DNA from: Zygnema circumcarinatum SAG 698-1b
Lineage: Eukaryota; Plantae; Zygnematophyceae
NCBI GenBank assembly: GCA_037447605.1
Contig: CM074820.1
Span: forward strand, 620,001 to 684,000
Length of the DNA stretch: 64,000 bases
Direction of reading: 5' to 3'
A model generated the notes under the pieces. That model saw nothing but the letters and a program-made list of their open reading frames with translations, was not told the DNA's origin and did no database searches. The translations under genes were made by a program, and so were the position numbers. Below are positions 53,886 to 64,000 of the stretch, piece by piece; the first letter of the stretch is position 1, and each line of letters starts with the position of its first letter.

Positions 53886-56353
53886 ATGTACAACTTCATC
53901 GTGGTGGAGTTCGAGGCCGGAGGGCACAAAAACGACCTCCGCAATGCGAACGCGTGGCGGGCGACGGCGGCGGAACTGATCGGAACGCTGATCTTTGTGT
54001 TTGTGGGGGCGGGCTCCGTCGTGACCAGCGGTGAGAGGGCGCATGGAGCTGGGGGGGGGGGGGAGGGAGAGGGGGGGAAGGGANNNNNNNNNNGGACAGG
54101 GAGGGAGGGGAGGGGACGAGAGGGGGGGAAGAGGAGGGAGGGGAGGGAGGGACAGGGATGGAGAGGGGAGGAGAGGGGCAAGGAGGAGGGAGGGGAGGGA
54201 GGGACAGGCAGGGACAGGGAGGGAGGAGACGGGAGGAGTGGGGCAGGGAGGAGGGAGGGGAGGGAGGGACAGGGAGGGAGGAGAGGGGAGGAGAAGGGGG
54301 AGGTGGAGGGAGGGGAGGAAGGACAGGGAGGGAGGAGAGGGGAGGAGAAGGGGGAGGAGGAGGGAGGGGAGGAAGGACAGGGAGGGAGGAGAGGGGAGGA
54401 GCGGGCTGGGGGGAGGAGGGAGGGGAGGGAGGAAAAGGGGGGCGGGGAGGAGGGAGGAGCAGACAGAAGCAAAATGGGAGTGGGGCAGAGGGGCATATGG
54501 AGAATGCGCAGAGAGGGAGGAGGCAGGGAGAGGAGGAAGAGAGAAGGACAGTTCAAGTAGACGAGGGGTGAGGATGACAACACCAATATGTGCAGTAGGT
54601 GTGTCAAGGAAAGGGAGAGAGTAGGATGAGGAAGGAGGGGAGAGACAAAGCTGGGCGGATGGGGTTGCGTTTGTTGGCGAGGAAAAAGCAGACGAAAAGA
54701 GGGAGAGAGAGAAAGAGCATAAAAAAAGAGGAACGGTGTCAGTTCCATTCTTTCTCATGGTCACCACTTTGTATTAACTACGAAAGCAGGTAGTGTGATT
54801 AATTTCATTTTTTTTTTTTCTTTTCAATAGTAAGATTGAAGGGTAGAGAAACCTTAGCTCTCCACAAGAGGTAGCTGCTACTTTGCCACTCTCATCCATT
54901 ACAGCAGAATAGCAAGAAGCACTGAAGTAGCCTCCCTTTTCCTAAGTGGGTTGATTTGCCTTCTCACCTTTTAACCCTCCCGATCATGTTTCTTCACATA
55001 AATTCCCAATACTTCAACCCAACCTCACCCCGCCCCCCATCGCTATGCCCCTTCTCTATGCCCCCCCTTCCCCCCATCTCATCTGACCTACTCCAACCCA
55101 ACCCAACCCGTTCCCCAACCAAAGCATTCCTCGTGGTCCCTTCCCCCAACCAAAGCATTCCTCGTGGTTCCCCCCCCCCCCACTCTCGTCCAGGCCTTGC
55201 TCTACAAAACCAAACTTTACTCGACCCTGCTCGAATTTTACTCATTGCGTTGGCCCACGGCCTGACCATCGCCATCCTCGTGGGCACCCTCGGGTCGATC
55301 TCGGGCGGGCACATCAACCCGGTCATCACCCTCGCCTTTGCGATCACGGGGCGGCTCAGCCTCGTGCGCGGGGCCATGTACTTCATCGCGCAAATCAGCG
55401 GAGGCCTCATCGGAGCGGGACTGCTGCGCGCCGTCACCGCCGGGACTGACTACGTGAGTGCCTCCAACCTTGTTCAACATGGTTCAACATGGTTCATATG
55501 TTGTGGACATGTTGGAATTTCGTGTTAGAACTGTCCAAAGGTTGTGTTGTAACCATCTCTTCTGACGTTCTCATGACATTGCTCTAACTTTGTCCTAACA
55601 TTGGTATAGACATAGCTCTGAATGTGGTTGCAACCTTGTTGTACATTTCTTGGAACTTTGCGATCACATCGCCTTAACCTCGTCCTTACATTGCTCTTTA
55701 CTTGCGTTGTCGTTTCATCGCCCTGATATTGTACTCGCTTTGTCTGAACAATGCTTCAAAGCTTGCCTCACCATTCCTACAACAATCTTTCTAACACTTT
55801 CACGAACCCTCAAACCTCTATAACCCACACTCCCCAAAACCCAAAACCCAAAACCCAAAACCCAAAACCCAAAACCTAAAACCCTAAACCCTCCATGCAG
55901 GGCCATTTGGGTGCCCACGCCGTGGGCCACATCGGCGAAGGCCAAGCCCTTGTTGTGGAGATTCTCATCACCTTCATCCTCGTGTTCACCGTGTTCGGCA
56001 CCGCCATAGACCAGCAAGGGCCGGGCCTCATCGCCTCAATCCTCATCGGCTTCGCCATTGGCATCGCCCATCTCCTCGCTGTGCCCCTAACCGGCTCCTC
56101 CATGAATCCTGCCCGTTCATTCGCCCCCGCGGTCTGGTCCGGGTATTGGCACAACCATTGGATCTATTGGCTAGGGCCGGCGATTGGTTCCGTGGCTGCC
56201 ACCTTAATATATGTGCATGTGCTCAAAAGGGGAGTGCGTGACGCGACACTTCCTGGGCATTTGGAGGAAGAAGCGACGAGGCAGACGGGGAGAGTGAAAG
56301 GTGATGTGACAGGGGAAGGGGGTGCGGGTAACGCGGCTACGGACACAGTCTAA
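53886..56353 (+). CDS. Aquaporin (MIP), HIP-like hybrid of TIP/PIP features, 3 exons
   Basis: join(53886..54030,55194..55453,55901..56353) in frame; AELIGT, SGGHINPV, EILIT, GSSMNPARS, HWIYWLGP. Confidence 0.9.
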
Positions 56354-58440: not shown

Positions 58441-59699
58441 TCACAGTGAAGGTGGTTTCGCAGCCTTCAACTTCGCCGTCCGAATGTGCTCCGCTTGAAT
58501 TGCAGCCGCATTATGCTGTGGGCAAAAAAGGTGAAAAAAGAAAGGTGTAAAAATTCGAGTTGATTCGAGTTGGCGGATAGACAATAATCTAGAGGACAAA
58601 AAAAATATTTTCATATTTAATCGTGCAGTTTTTATCCTTAGCTTATTCCTCACCAGGGGCCGGTTGGAGAGGAGTCTGAATAGCCTCTCGGTTGCGAGTT
58701 TAACGAAATCGAGAGGGAAATAAGATATGAGGCAATAGAGCCACACCACTCCCGCCCAGCCCCACCCGCAGCCCTTTATGGGCACAAAGGGCCAGTCCGC
58801 GTACACAGCGATAAAGGTAGCCGACTGCAAAGCGGAAAAAAATAAGGAGAAATAGGAAAGGGAATGAGAAATATAGATCCGATTGAGCACTTTGGGATAG
58901 AAATGGGAAGGGAGGTGCAATTGATATTTCAAATCCTTAAAGAAACGCCAACGGAACGTTTTGAAGGTTTTCACGGGAAGAGGGAGGGGNNNNNNNNNNG
59001 GGAGAGGGAGAGGGAGAGGGAGAGGGAGAGGGAGAGAGGGAAAAAATGAGATGAGGATAAGGCTTTCCAAGTATAACAGAGAATTGAGGATTCCGACGTT
59101 TAAATAAAGATGACTGGAGATGAAGGGAGGAAGGGAGGGAGGGAGGGAGGGAGGAATGCATATAATCTTACAGAGAAGTAATTGGTCCTGACGCCCTCAT
59201 AGAACAGCGTGGTGCAAGCCGCCTGGTATGCGCCCATAGTGCAACACGTGGCAAAAATCTCCACAAGCCCCCACGAGTCCGGCGTCTGCGACGGCCTCAC
59301 CCTATCCTTCGATATCGCCATGATGGTGCCGTTATTCAGAAACGCGATAATAAGCACCAGGAACGGCGGCGTGTCGAACTTCCATATCAGTGCCAGTAGC
59401 ATGAACCCCACCACTATCCGCACAGTCCCCGCCGTGTCGTACAGCACGTAATTCCGCATCCGTTGGAAGATGACGCGGCTGCGGATTATGGCGCTGATGA
59501 TGGTGCTGAGCCCCGGCTCCGTGAGGACGATGTCGGCGGCGTCCCGGGCCGCGTCGGTGGCCCCCGCGACGGCGATGCCGACGTTGGCGGCCTTGAGGGC
59601 GGGGGCGTCGTTAACGCCGTCGCCGGTCATGCCCACGAGGTGGCGGCCGCGCTGGAGGGTCTGGACGATGTGGTATTTGTGCTCTGGGGNNNNNNNNNN

Positions 59700-59737
<38 letters not shown>

Positions 59738-61047
59738 GGGAGAGAGGAGGGGGAAAGGGGAGAGAGAGAGTTCGGAAAGGGGGGAGAGAGAGAAAGAGAG
59801 AAAAAGAGAGAGGGAGCGGGGGGTAAAGGGGTGCGAGAGAGATTCGGGAAAAGGGGAGAGATAAAGAGAGCGGGAGAAGGAGAGAGAGAAAGAGAGAAAG
59901 AGAGAGAGGGAGAGGGGAGTAAAGGGGCGCGAGAGAGAGAGAGAGGGTAAAAGGTGGGGAGAGAGAGAGTACCTGGAAAGACCCCTGCGAAGCCGTCCGC
60001 GCTCTCCACCAAGTCCTCGAGAGTGGTCCCGGGCGGCAGGTTGTCGCGGTGCGTGAGGACGGAGGCGGGGTACATGTCCGCGCCCATCCCCAGCCGCCGG
60101 GCCATCTCCTTCCCAATAGCGAGCTGGTCACCTGCAACCCACGCATTTCCCCATGCTGTCAATTCATTTCATTGAAAAAAAAAACAATGGGCCAAAGAAA
60201 AAAAAAACTTGCCTTTTAATAACGCGTGAAAATCATCAGAAATTTTACAATTTTATATTTTTTTGGGCCCTAAAGGAGAGGAAAGGTGTGGCGGGTGGGA
60301 GGGAGTGCCTGTGATCATCTTGACGCTGACCCCGAGCGTGATGGCGTCAGCAATGGTCTCCGCGGTGTCAGCACGCGGCGGGTCGAGCACGGGCAGCACC
60401 CCCGCCACCTCCCACCGCCCCCCGCCATGGCCGCGGGCACCCACGGCCTCGCCCTCGGGGACAGCCTGGAGGGAGAGAGGGGGGAGGGAGAGAGAGAGGG
60501 AGGGGAGGGGGAGAGAGAGGNNNNNNNNNNGGGGTGAGGTGAGGGTAGAGATGGAAAATATGTGCGATAGGGTGAGGTGGAAAGAGGTTTGTCGTCAGGG
60601 AGAGGAGGTAAAGGAGATACGAAAGGAGGTGAGATGACAAGGGAAGGCGGACAAGAGGGGGATACGAAAGCAAGGAAAGATTTCATTAGTTAAGGAGGCT
60701 AATGCACTGCTGAAGAACGGCTATATACTGACTTCGAAAGAGATGGCCCTCATTTTATCACGAAATCCTTCAAAGAGAGAGGTGAGAAGATGTAGAAGTG
60801 CGAGAAGAGGGAGAAGAGCTCGACGAGCGAGATGAGGGAAAAAGTTTGAGAAGAAAGAGATGAGAGAAAACAAAGAAGTGAGTAAAGAGAGACAAGCGCG
60901 AAGATAGAGCAAAGCTGAAAAGACACGATAAAGGAAAGAGAGTGAGTAGATAGAATATAAAGAAGAGACGGAAGGGGAAGAAAGAAGAGGAGCAGTAATA
61001 GAGAGACTAGAGGGAAGAATGAGAAGCGAGAGAAAAGCGAGAGGAGG

Positions 61048-61103
<56 letters not shown>

Positions 61104-63023
61104 TACCTGGCGAGCCACAGCGAGAGAGCGGAGCCCTCTGTCTGCGTAGCTGTTGATGAGTTCGTGCACCCTGTCTTCGATTTGCGCTTTGTTCCAAGCC
61201 AGACTCAAAACCTAATAAGAAATAAACAAAGAGAATTTGGAAAAGGAACAGTAAGAGAGACAAGGGAAAGCCTAAAGAAAATTTGACTCCATATGTGTAG
61301 AAATAAGCAATAATACTCTTTACTTTTCTTTGTATTATGAGGTGGTTTCTTACTTGTTCAGGCGCCCCCTTGCAGGCTCTCTCCACTCTCCCATCTTCCA
61401 AAACGTAAGTCGTAGCAGCTCTCTTATCCACCGGATTGAATGGGAGATGATGGATTTCCCTAATGCCAGCTCTTGCCTGCAAAACATATCAAACAGAGTA
61501 AGAAAAACAGAGAAAATCAAGAACATTGATCGAATTATGTGGGTAAGAAAAGCATAGATAAGTACAGTTTTGAGCCTTGCACATGTTCAAGTAAATGAAG
61601 GGGATGAAAGAGGACTAAACTTGCTCTTCTATTTACCTTCTCCACATCTCCTATGGTATCAATAAGAGCTTTGTCAATAGGGTCAGGATGATCCGTACGA
61701 GCAGCTCGAACAGCAAGTATGAGAACATCTTCCTTTGTCAAATCTGGGAGGAAAACCTGCAAAAAAAATAAGCAAAAAAACACAAAATAGTTACCCCCAA
61801 AACATAAGGTCAAGGATTTAGGTTGGAAGCTTGTCAAAAAAAAAAAAAAAGTCGGCAACAACATAAACGGAAAGGAAACTAGGGTTATTGAGATGGCGCC
61901 ATAGCAAACTGCTATACCTCGATGATGTCAGTATCCACAGAGAGCTGATTTAGGGTTAGGGTTCCGGTCTTGTCACTGCAGAGAATGTCCATTCCGGCCA
62001 TCTCCTCAATAGCAGTAATTCGCTTCACTATGGCTCCCTGCATAAACTCAAGTCCGGACTGTATCAAAGGAGAACGGAAAAAAAGCAGAAAATAAAACAG
62101 CAGCTCACATGGCAACAAAAACCATTTCACTCCCACTTCTCTCCTCCACTAGTCTCACTCTCCTGTCCACCCTCTCCCTACCTTGACATCCCAATTCCTC
62201 TCCATCTCTCCCACCCCCACCTGACCAATTCCTCCCCATATTCCACCTCTCTCTCTCACTCCTCTTCTCCCCACCATCTTCGTCCCCCTCCCCATTCTCA
62301 ATCTCCAGTTCCACTTTCCTTCCTCCCCTTCCCCCTCCCCCCACACCGTCTCCCCTATTGCCTTCCCTTCCCCCTTGCCTGTTTCCCCCTCCACCCCCCC
62401 ATCCCCACTTATTTCCTTTTCTCTCCCCCCTTCCCCCTTCCTCACTCTCTATTTAGCTATTCCCCCTCTCCCTACTCACTCTCAAACCCCTTCTCCCCGC
62501 TATCCCTAACCACCTCTCCCTCTACCCACGCCTTTCCAAGTAACTCCCCCTCCACCTCACCCTCTCTCTCTCCCTCCACCTCCCGCCCCACTGCCCCTCC
62601 CCCTCCCNNNNNNNNNNCCCCCCCTCCCTCTCCCTCTCCCTCTCCCCCTGCTGCCGCACGTGCCTGTCCCGCGAGGTGGTGGCTCCCTATGGCCATGGTG
62701 ACGGAGAGCACGGTCGGCATCGCGATGGGGATGCCCCCCACGAGCAGCACCAAGATGTTGTCGATGCCGCGACGGTACGGACGCCGCTGTACGGCGAACA
62801 TCACAATGATCTCGATCACGATGCACACCGCGATCAGGACGATGCAGAACGCGCCGATAAGCGTCAGCACCTGCGGGAGGGAGGGAGGGAGGGAGGGAGA
62901 GGGAGGGAGCGAGGGAGAGAGGGAGGGAGGGAGGAGGGGAGATATGAAGAGTGTTAGAAGGGAAAAGGGAGAGGAAACAGGACAAGGGAGACCCATTTGA
63001 TGGGCAGAGATGGAGAAAGTGAA

Positions 63024-63085
<62 letters not shown>

Positions 63086-64000
63086 TGAGACAGAGAGAGC
63101 ACCGACCATCTGAAAGTGTCCGGATGCAGCCGTGTTCTCCACCATTTGAGCCGCTCTCCCAAGGAAGCTGTTGGGTCCGGTGGCTATTACCAGAGCCTGC
63201 AGCTCCCCCTGCTTGCAGGTCGACCCCGAAAAGACCAACTCGCCGCTTGACTTGCTCACAGGGAGAGCCTCGCCAGTCAGGGCGGACTGCGGAAAAATGT
63301 CCAGAAACGAAAATAAGTAAAGAGAACGTAAAGAAGTGGAAAATGAAAAATGGAAAAAAGCTGTACAGGAAAAAAGCCCAATCTTTAGATAGGATGTAAT
63401 GAGGGTCTAAGATGGTGTGAAGGTTTTCAGGTGTGTGTGTGTGTGTGTTTTTTTTTCTTACTTGATCGATTTTTAAGGGCTCCCCCTCAAGCAGGCGAGC
63501 ATCGGCCGGCACTATGTCCCCTCCGCGGATGGAAATTATGTCTCCGGGAACGAGCTCTCCGGCGCTCACTTCTGTCCAAGTTCCGTCTCTCACAACCTGA
63601 GAATTTCAATCAAAAAAGAAAAAAAATCAAAAGGAAAAAAACAAAAGACAAACAGACATATAAACCATGCAGACTCAAATTGGTGTGTAGAAAGAAAAAA
63701 GGGCCATTGACTCGCAGGAAAACTGAAACAATCATCAATAAAATTACATAGTTGTGCCCGAGTGGAAGAAAGATAAAGTCAGCGACTCAGTAATTTTCCC
63801 ACACTTTCTTTCTTTAGTCTTTAGTTTTTTTCTTTAGTTTTTTTTTTCGTACTTTAGCGTTGAGTGCGAGGTTCGCCATTAGACCCGCCGCCGCCTTTCC
63901 AGCATTGCGTTCTTCCACGTACGAGAGAGAGGCGTTGACCACGAGGAGGAACACAATGCCCAGGAAGTCCTGCCAGTCCGGGGGCTCGCCCTGGGGAGGG
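58441..64000 (-). CDS. P3A-type (plasma-membrane H+-ATPase family) P-type ATPase, divergent; 5' end beyond window, one exon probably in a gap, C-terminus uncertain
   Basis: [84 protein letters not shown] across at least 13 exons. The M8 exon is missing, with a gap at 58990-58999. Confidence 0.92.

Follow-up and report, generated by a model that had tools for sequence, protein, structure and literature searches.

A P3A-type ATPase gene of a streptophyte alga with asparagine at the M6 proton-acceptor position and an aspartate in M5: a possible relocation of the essential carboxylate

A multi-exon gene for a P3A-type ATPase, of which 13 exons are visible, lies at positions 58441-63999 on the minus strand of the window (the whole 64-kb stretch of DNA analysed here). 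Its predicted product has lost the M6 aspartate of the plant and fungal proton pumps and carries instead an asparagine, together with an aspartate at the M5 position that contacts this site in Pma1. As judged from the sequence, our best reading is that the gene is a real, selectively maintained and fast-evolving P3A-I paralogue of a streptophyte alga. It may encode a P3A pump that works without the canonical M6 Asp, the carboxylate being relocated to the contacting M5 position in a paralogue devoid of the R domain, and we give this reading a probability of roughly 0.35.

The M5 and M6 substitutions in their sequence context

In M6, the minus strand reads CTG AAT AAC GGC ACC (59339-59325), that is LNNGT, and the AAC codon (59331-59333, minus strand) places an Asn at the proton acceptor/donor position, the equivalent of AHA2 Asp684 and Pma1 Asp730. 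In M5, the GAC codon (59436-59438, minus strand) of the triplets TAC GAC ACG (Y-D-T) places an Asp at the equivalent of AHA2 Ala649 and Pma1 Arg695. These correspondences were read from phmmer alignments against all PDB chains, in which exon 11 aligned end to end with AHA2 (5ksd, E 2.9e-70); the AHA2 numbers given here are the positions in the 5ksd chain plus an offset of 11. The same searches put the Asn under Asp730 and the Asp under Arg695 in the Pma1 chains of Neurospora and yeast (1mhs/7ny1, 7vh5). Both codons are present in the assembly as the original prediction had described them, and its mapping of the two residues onto AHA2 684/649 and Pma1 730/695 was correct.

The original prediction had also listed the M2 Asn, the M5 Arg, PIAMP, DKTGT, KGAP and GDGVND as intact, and the in-frame translation bears this out. 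The phmmer alignment shows that the Arg at AHA2 Arg655 in M5 is retained (CGG, 59418-59420, minus strand). The Asn at AHA2 Asn106, the gatekeeper of M2 (AAC, 63934-63936, minus strand), is retained too and was found by tblastn within VVNASLSY. M4 contains GGIPIAMP (62715-62738, minus strand), a published synapomorphy of clade P3A-I (PMC9708826). The phosphorylation motif DKTGT (61960-61974, minus strand) and the P-domain motif in exon 11 (GDGVND region, 59592-59624, minus strand) are unchanged, and so is KGAPE. All the P-type catalytic motifs are in frame, the A-domain one being present as TGEA instead of TGES (63266-63277, minus strand), a form found in 4 of the 35 aligned sequences that include the motif (34 representatives plus the window gene).

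Among the membrane segments present in the window (M2-M7 and M10), the M5 Asp is the sole new charged residue. The changes around it are grouped: in the cytoplasmic half of M5 (AHA2 positions 644-654), 7 of 11 residues depart from the plant consensus, whereas the outer half of M5 follows it. From sequence comparison, this cluster looks like a local remodelling of the ion site.

Family placement, conservation and search for relatives

TIGR01647 (plasma-membrane proton-efflux P-type ATPase) was the best family for each of exons 1 to 11. These exons tile positions 54-690 of the family model without gaps and together score about 713 bits, above the cut-off of 615.5; the score is a rough sum of exon-by-exon scans without the N-terminus and without M8-M10. 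At every exon, the best match was to the AHA2/land-plant and streptophyte P3A-I pumps (TIGR01647; 5ksd), with which the gene shares GGIPIAMP, Asn106, Arg655 and the P-type motifs; identity to these pumps was about 56-63% overall and 66% in the exon encoding M5-M7, which as a rule varies very little. The gene differs from AHA2-type pumps by Asn for Asp684 and Asp for Ala649, by the lack of an R domain and of the YTV end, and by M8-M9, which are absent from the assembly.

In a maximum-likelihood tree, the window gene was sister to the angiosperm AHA representatives (SH-aLRT 100), inside the rows carrying the P3A-I M4 motif, and it falls into clade P3A-I by the criteria of Steger et al. (2022). 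Its end branch was 0.57, roughly twice the path to canonical AHA. The nearest nameable outgroup was a stramenopile pump (Hondaea), the tree being drawn from a library clustered at 50% identity in which bryophytes and streptophyte algae have no representatives of their own.

Conservation was measured in an alignment of the gene model with 44 full-length representatives of all P3A clades, in which 115 columns are at least 90% conserved. The window gene is among the best-behaved rows and deviates at 1 of these 115 columns, namely at the M6 Asp. In contrast, recognisably decayed sequences of the same alignment deviate at 12-23 columns. When exon 11 was compared within 409 aligned sequences, D684N was again the only deviation at columns conserved to at least 90%. 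General decay was thus ruled out by the conserved-column counts, with the 115 columns as well as with the 409 sequences of exon 11. The divergence from the nearest AHA is about 37-44%, and since neutral drift over such a distance would be expected to alter dozens of the conserved columns, this divergence appears to have arisen under purifying selection. The view that the gene does not look decayed, already expressed in the original prediction, is therefore upheld by the single deviation in 115 conserved columns, the lack of any stop or frameshift and the retention of GC3 (see below).

The M6 Asp was found in 97.6% of the 409 aligned sequences, and the exceptions that we inspected were decayed or truncated models. 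It was present in every intact sequence examined (150 representatives, about 190 fragments of 94-616 aa and 80 metagenome loci). A 2020 paper describes both Asp684 and Asn106 as conserved throughout the known pumps of land plants and algae (PMC6985207). Among about 340 other proteins, only 3 have Asp or Glu at the M5 position, and the pair formed by the M5 Asp and the M6 Asn was absent from these ~340 proteins and from the 80 metagenome loci, all of which have the M6 Asp and most of which are intronless or fungal. A degenerate DNA pattern for LNNGTIM.ISKDR gave 0 matches in the JGI metagenomes. The original prediction knew of no natural example; the ~340 proteins, the 80 metagenome loci and the pattern scan supplied none either. 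From these comparisons, it seems to us that the observation is explained neither by decay nor by chance.

No relative of exon 11 with more than 70% identity was found in the representative library, which clusters at 50% identity so that closer full-length kin would sit behind a generic AHA representative, nor in word-index searches that covered billions of predicted proteins in the length ranges 94-299 aa and 194-616 aa. As for the streptophyte algae, the P3A-I genes listed for them in the 2022 survey of streptophyte P3A genes are all R-domain-bearing ones (PMC9708826).

Several sequences with a changed M6 site or with an Asp or Glu at the M5 position occur naturally in P3A-I, and in this they resemble the window gene. 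Papaver nudicaule has a full-length plant-type P3A homologue (P0086, 877 aa) with LNQGS in M6. Its motifs are degenerate (NKTGV for DKTGT, TGDC for TGES and GHGVGD for GDGVND), and it is an apparent pseudo-ATPase or decayed copy, still predicted as an intact ORF. A Ceratopteris model (P0141) is another exception with a changed M6 site and is decayed or truncated. In Arachis hypogaea, two models annotated as 'plasma membrane ATPase 2-like' (P0039 and P0055) have an Asp at AHA2 Ala649 (NYTIYDVSITIR) and retain the M6 Asp; both stop just after LND. These copies thus differ from the window gene, since they have lost catalytic motifs or are truncated models and none of them combines the M5 Asp with the M6 Asn, whereas the window gene retains every universal residue but one.

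Gene structure, missing exon and C-terminus

The gene model was built by tblastn with a 954-aa plant AHA (Corymbia, P0004) and by inspection of the splice sites. All exons are on the minus strand. The first four are at 63999-63853, 63596-63462, 63286-63107 and 62870-62664, exons 5 to 8 at 62037-61918, 61756-61637, 61476-61354 and 61211-61107, and exons 9 and 10 at 60465-60309 and 60131-59973. Exon 11 (59172-59683) encodes the end of the P domain, M5, M6 and M7 and alone scores 256.7 bits with TIGR01647; exon 12 (58654-58824) encodes the tail of M9, M10 and the start of the C-terminal tail, and exon 13 (58441-58515) the short remainder of this tail up to the stop codon TGA (58443-58441). The spliced translation is 736 residues long (2.2 kb of CDS) with zero stops or frameshifts. 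About 90-92 N-terminal residues, including M1, fall outside the end of the window. GC3 of the ATPase gene is 0.72 compared with an intron GC of 0.46, and the neighbouring MIP gene is alike in this respect.

GC3 is not uniform along the gene. It is only 0.30-0.57 in exons 5-7 (61354-62037, minus strand), which belong to the N domain, while most other exons have 0.70-0.90; we record this dip as compositional heterogeneity inside one gene. The MIP (aquaporin) gene has two exons (54956-56353, plus strand), and it and the ATPase gene are arranged tail to tail. Its two pieces score 111.7 and 80.7 bits with Pfam MIP; its first pore motif is NPV and its second NPA.

Two of the 12 introns require GC donors, both of the form CAG|GCAC: intron 4 (62658-62663, minus strand, CAG|GCACGT), for which there is no in-frame GT alternative, and intron 9 (60303-60308, minus strand, CAG|GCACTC), with no GT nearby. 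GC-AG introns can be functional; we nevertheless counted the two donors against the reading as a functional pump.

About 58 codons, corresponding to M8 and most of M9, are absent between exon 11 (which ends ..TNYFS) and exon 12 (which begins SATFIAVYA..), so that the membrane segments present are M2-M7 and M10. What we call intron 11 (58825-59171, minus strand) joins the two exons in frame. No M8-M9 coding sequence was found anywhere in the window by tblastn, which gave only noise elsewhere. An AHA-like locus of the liverwort Riccia, which has intron positions in common with the window gene, has phase-0 introns at both edges of the missing piece and one exon between them, meaning that precisely one ancestral exon is missing. 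This locus (Riccia sorocarpa, L081:8001-10400, CM100796.1), for which the annotation gives two short hypothetical proteins, is interrupted by in-frame stops and by a frameshift around M7-M8 and is probably a decaying AHA copy.

Intron 11 contains a run of 10 N (58990-58999) flanked by CCCTCT-type repeats, which is either an assembly gap hiding an exon or a collapsed repeat. There are 14 N runs within 15615-62617 of the window, thirteen of them exactly 10 N long and the other 100 N. Those within the ATPase gene, at 58990, 59690, 60521 and 62608, are all in CT/CCCT microsatellites of introns. A CT-type repeat occurs in almost every intron of the gene and seems to break the assembly systematically. 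Because N runs interrupt the CT repeats of 4 of the 12 introns, a small contig bearing the exon may have dropped out, and we put the chance that the M8-M9 exon is hidden in an assembly gap at a little over half. A clean in-frame loss of the exon, joining M7 to M10 with topology preserved, is a possible alternative, in which case the protein would probably not be a normal pump.

At its other end, the protein stops about 40 residues past M10 (..KAAKPPSL*) and has no penultimate Thr (YTV). A tblastn search of the window with an R-domain-bearing AHA found no autoinhibitory R domain (~100 aa) downstream. The missing exon, the absent C-terminal R domain and the two GC donors had all been overlooked in the original prediction.

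Possible functions of the altered ion site

The proposal that fits the retained and the altered residues is the following. The machinery for ATP hydrolysis and phosphoenzyme formation is kept along with the M2 Asn and the M5 Arg of the proton path, and the ion site would have been rebuilt. In M6, the Asp through which AHA2 and Pma1 take up and release the proton has been replaced by Asn. The M5 Asp would then be the new protonatable group and would form a pair with the M6 Asn comparable to that of Asp684 with Asn106, and the product would be an ATP-driven, constitutively active pump of H+ (or of a small cation) with altered pKa and coupling. That the M5 Asp has assumed the protonatable role in a protein that still pumps, though without regulation, is a tentative idea to which we grant somewhat less than an even chance.

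Structures of the known pumps bear on this proposal. In Pma1, R695 points into the central cavity and is salt-bridged to D730 in E2P (PMC8580308, PMC11051447), and the two papers back the pairing of Arg695 with Asp730 put forward in the original prediction. In AHA2, the backbone of Ala649 binds a water molecule beside the central cavity (PMC5387105). Given these contacts, the new M5 Asp and the M6 Asn would, by homology, be neighbours in the proton path. From helix geometry, position 649 should share a helix face with Thr653 and be one turn closer to the cytoplasm. As a counterpoint, six residues, or 240 degrees of helix, separate the M5 Asp from Arg655, and the Asp is displaced from the canonical site towards the cytoplasm; the 'plug' logic of this Arg may thus not carry over.

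Fungal Pma1 (7ny1, 7vh5) offers the closest parallel for the geometry, with a charged M5 residue facing M6 at the same two positions. However, Pma1 has Arg in M5 and Asp in M6, whereas the window gene has Asp in M5 and a neutral Asn in M6; Pma1 also belongs to P3A-IIc and not to P3A-I, and the window gene in addition retains the M5 Arg655. Changes at this pair are reportedly tolerated in yeast: the double mutants R695D/D730R and R695A/D730A of Sen Gupta et al. 1998 (J Biol Chem) are said to fold and to pump. For the plant enzyme, the laboratory mutant AHA2 D684N, reportedly described by Buch-Pedersen et al. in 2000 and 2003, has the same substitution at the same residue as the window gene. According to a title in the reference list of PMC6985207, the substitution reportedly puts an end to pumping and leaves the enzyme trapped in E1P, which counts against the reading as a pump. 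Nevertheless, the mutant has no second-site change, whereas the window gene has the adjacent M5 Asp and several further changes in M5 and M6.

The same report supports a different reading, in which the gene encodes a P3A paralogue that is catalytically competent and yet does not pump, being uncoupled or regulatory; the Asn would mimic a permanently protonated site, and the protein would have been kept for another role, for example as a hetero-oligomer partner of a canonical pump. Such a role would agree with cytoplasmic domains that are perfectly conserved beside an altered ion site, and with the finding that P3A pumps are oligomers (PMC8580308). There is also a model for it in PH1 of petunia and Citrus, a tonoplast P3B protein that binds the P3A pump PH5 and promotes pumping, and that is a conserved relative with no known transport of its own (PMC6391481); PH1 serves as a model for the non-pumping role only, being a P3B protein of flowering plants whereas the window gene is P3A-I. 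Nevertheless, Asn106, Arg655 and the whole PIAMP region of M4, which matter mainly for transport, are retained, and the rare M5 Asp beside the lost Asp looks compensatory. We consider a non-pumping paralogue rather unlikely. The M5 position, which we take to be one helical turn above the equivalent of SERCA Asn768 on the ion-binding face, would instead favour a change of ion specificity, the M5/M6 site binding Na+, K+ or a divalent ion instead of H+ or in exchange for it, and the concentration of the alterations at the ion site points the same way. But the site offers one carboxylate only, without the extra ligands that P2 pumps have in M4, M5 and M6, and Arg655, typical of H+ pumps, is still there. 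As we also know of no precedent within P3A, a changed specificity is to our mind quite improbable.

The remaining explanations would deprive the substitution of functional meaning. The gene might be a pseudogene, a redundant paralogue inactivated only very recently, whose early lesions would be the D-to-N change, the disappearance of the M8-M9 exon and the switch of donors from GT to GC. This would account for the missing exon and the GC donors of introns 4 and 9, and it agrees both with the lack of any close relative or fragment among the billions of predicted proteins (94-616 aa) and with the existence of decayed plant P3A copies whose M6 site is changed (Papaver P0086, Ceratopteris P0141). 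However, these decayed copies deviate at many universal columns and the window gene at 1 of 115; it has neither stop nor frameshift and its GC3 is retained. Moreover, the missing piece is exactly one exon situated at an N gap, which fits an assembly artefact, the GC-AG introns may work as such, and the ~40% divergence clearly accumulated under purifying selection. A pseudogene of this kind therefore seems unlikely. Finally, AAC could be a base-call or assembly error for GAC, the gene then encoding an ordinary pump, since the two codons are a single G-to-A difference apart and the assembly is rich in gaps (14 N runs in 64 kb). But the prior for an error at exactly that base is tiny, the gaps are confined to CT repeats and spare the exons, and the same site is unusual in two further, independent respects, the rare M5 Asp and the clustered M5/M6 changes; we find such an error hardly credible.

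Every current model of how plant and fungal P3A ATPases pump protons is built around the M6 Asp, and the window gene amounts to a natural double mutant in which only this one universal residue has been lost and an Asp has been gained at the contacting M5 position. If the protein pumps, M6 is not the only possible place for the acceptor, and the new geometry would allow the roles of Asn106 and Arg655 to be tested. If the carboxylate has indeed been relocated, this would be the first natural P-type H+-ATPase whose proton acceptor has changed place. If the protein instead does not pump, it would represent a novelty of another sort, namely a conserved pseudo-transporter within P3A.
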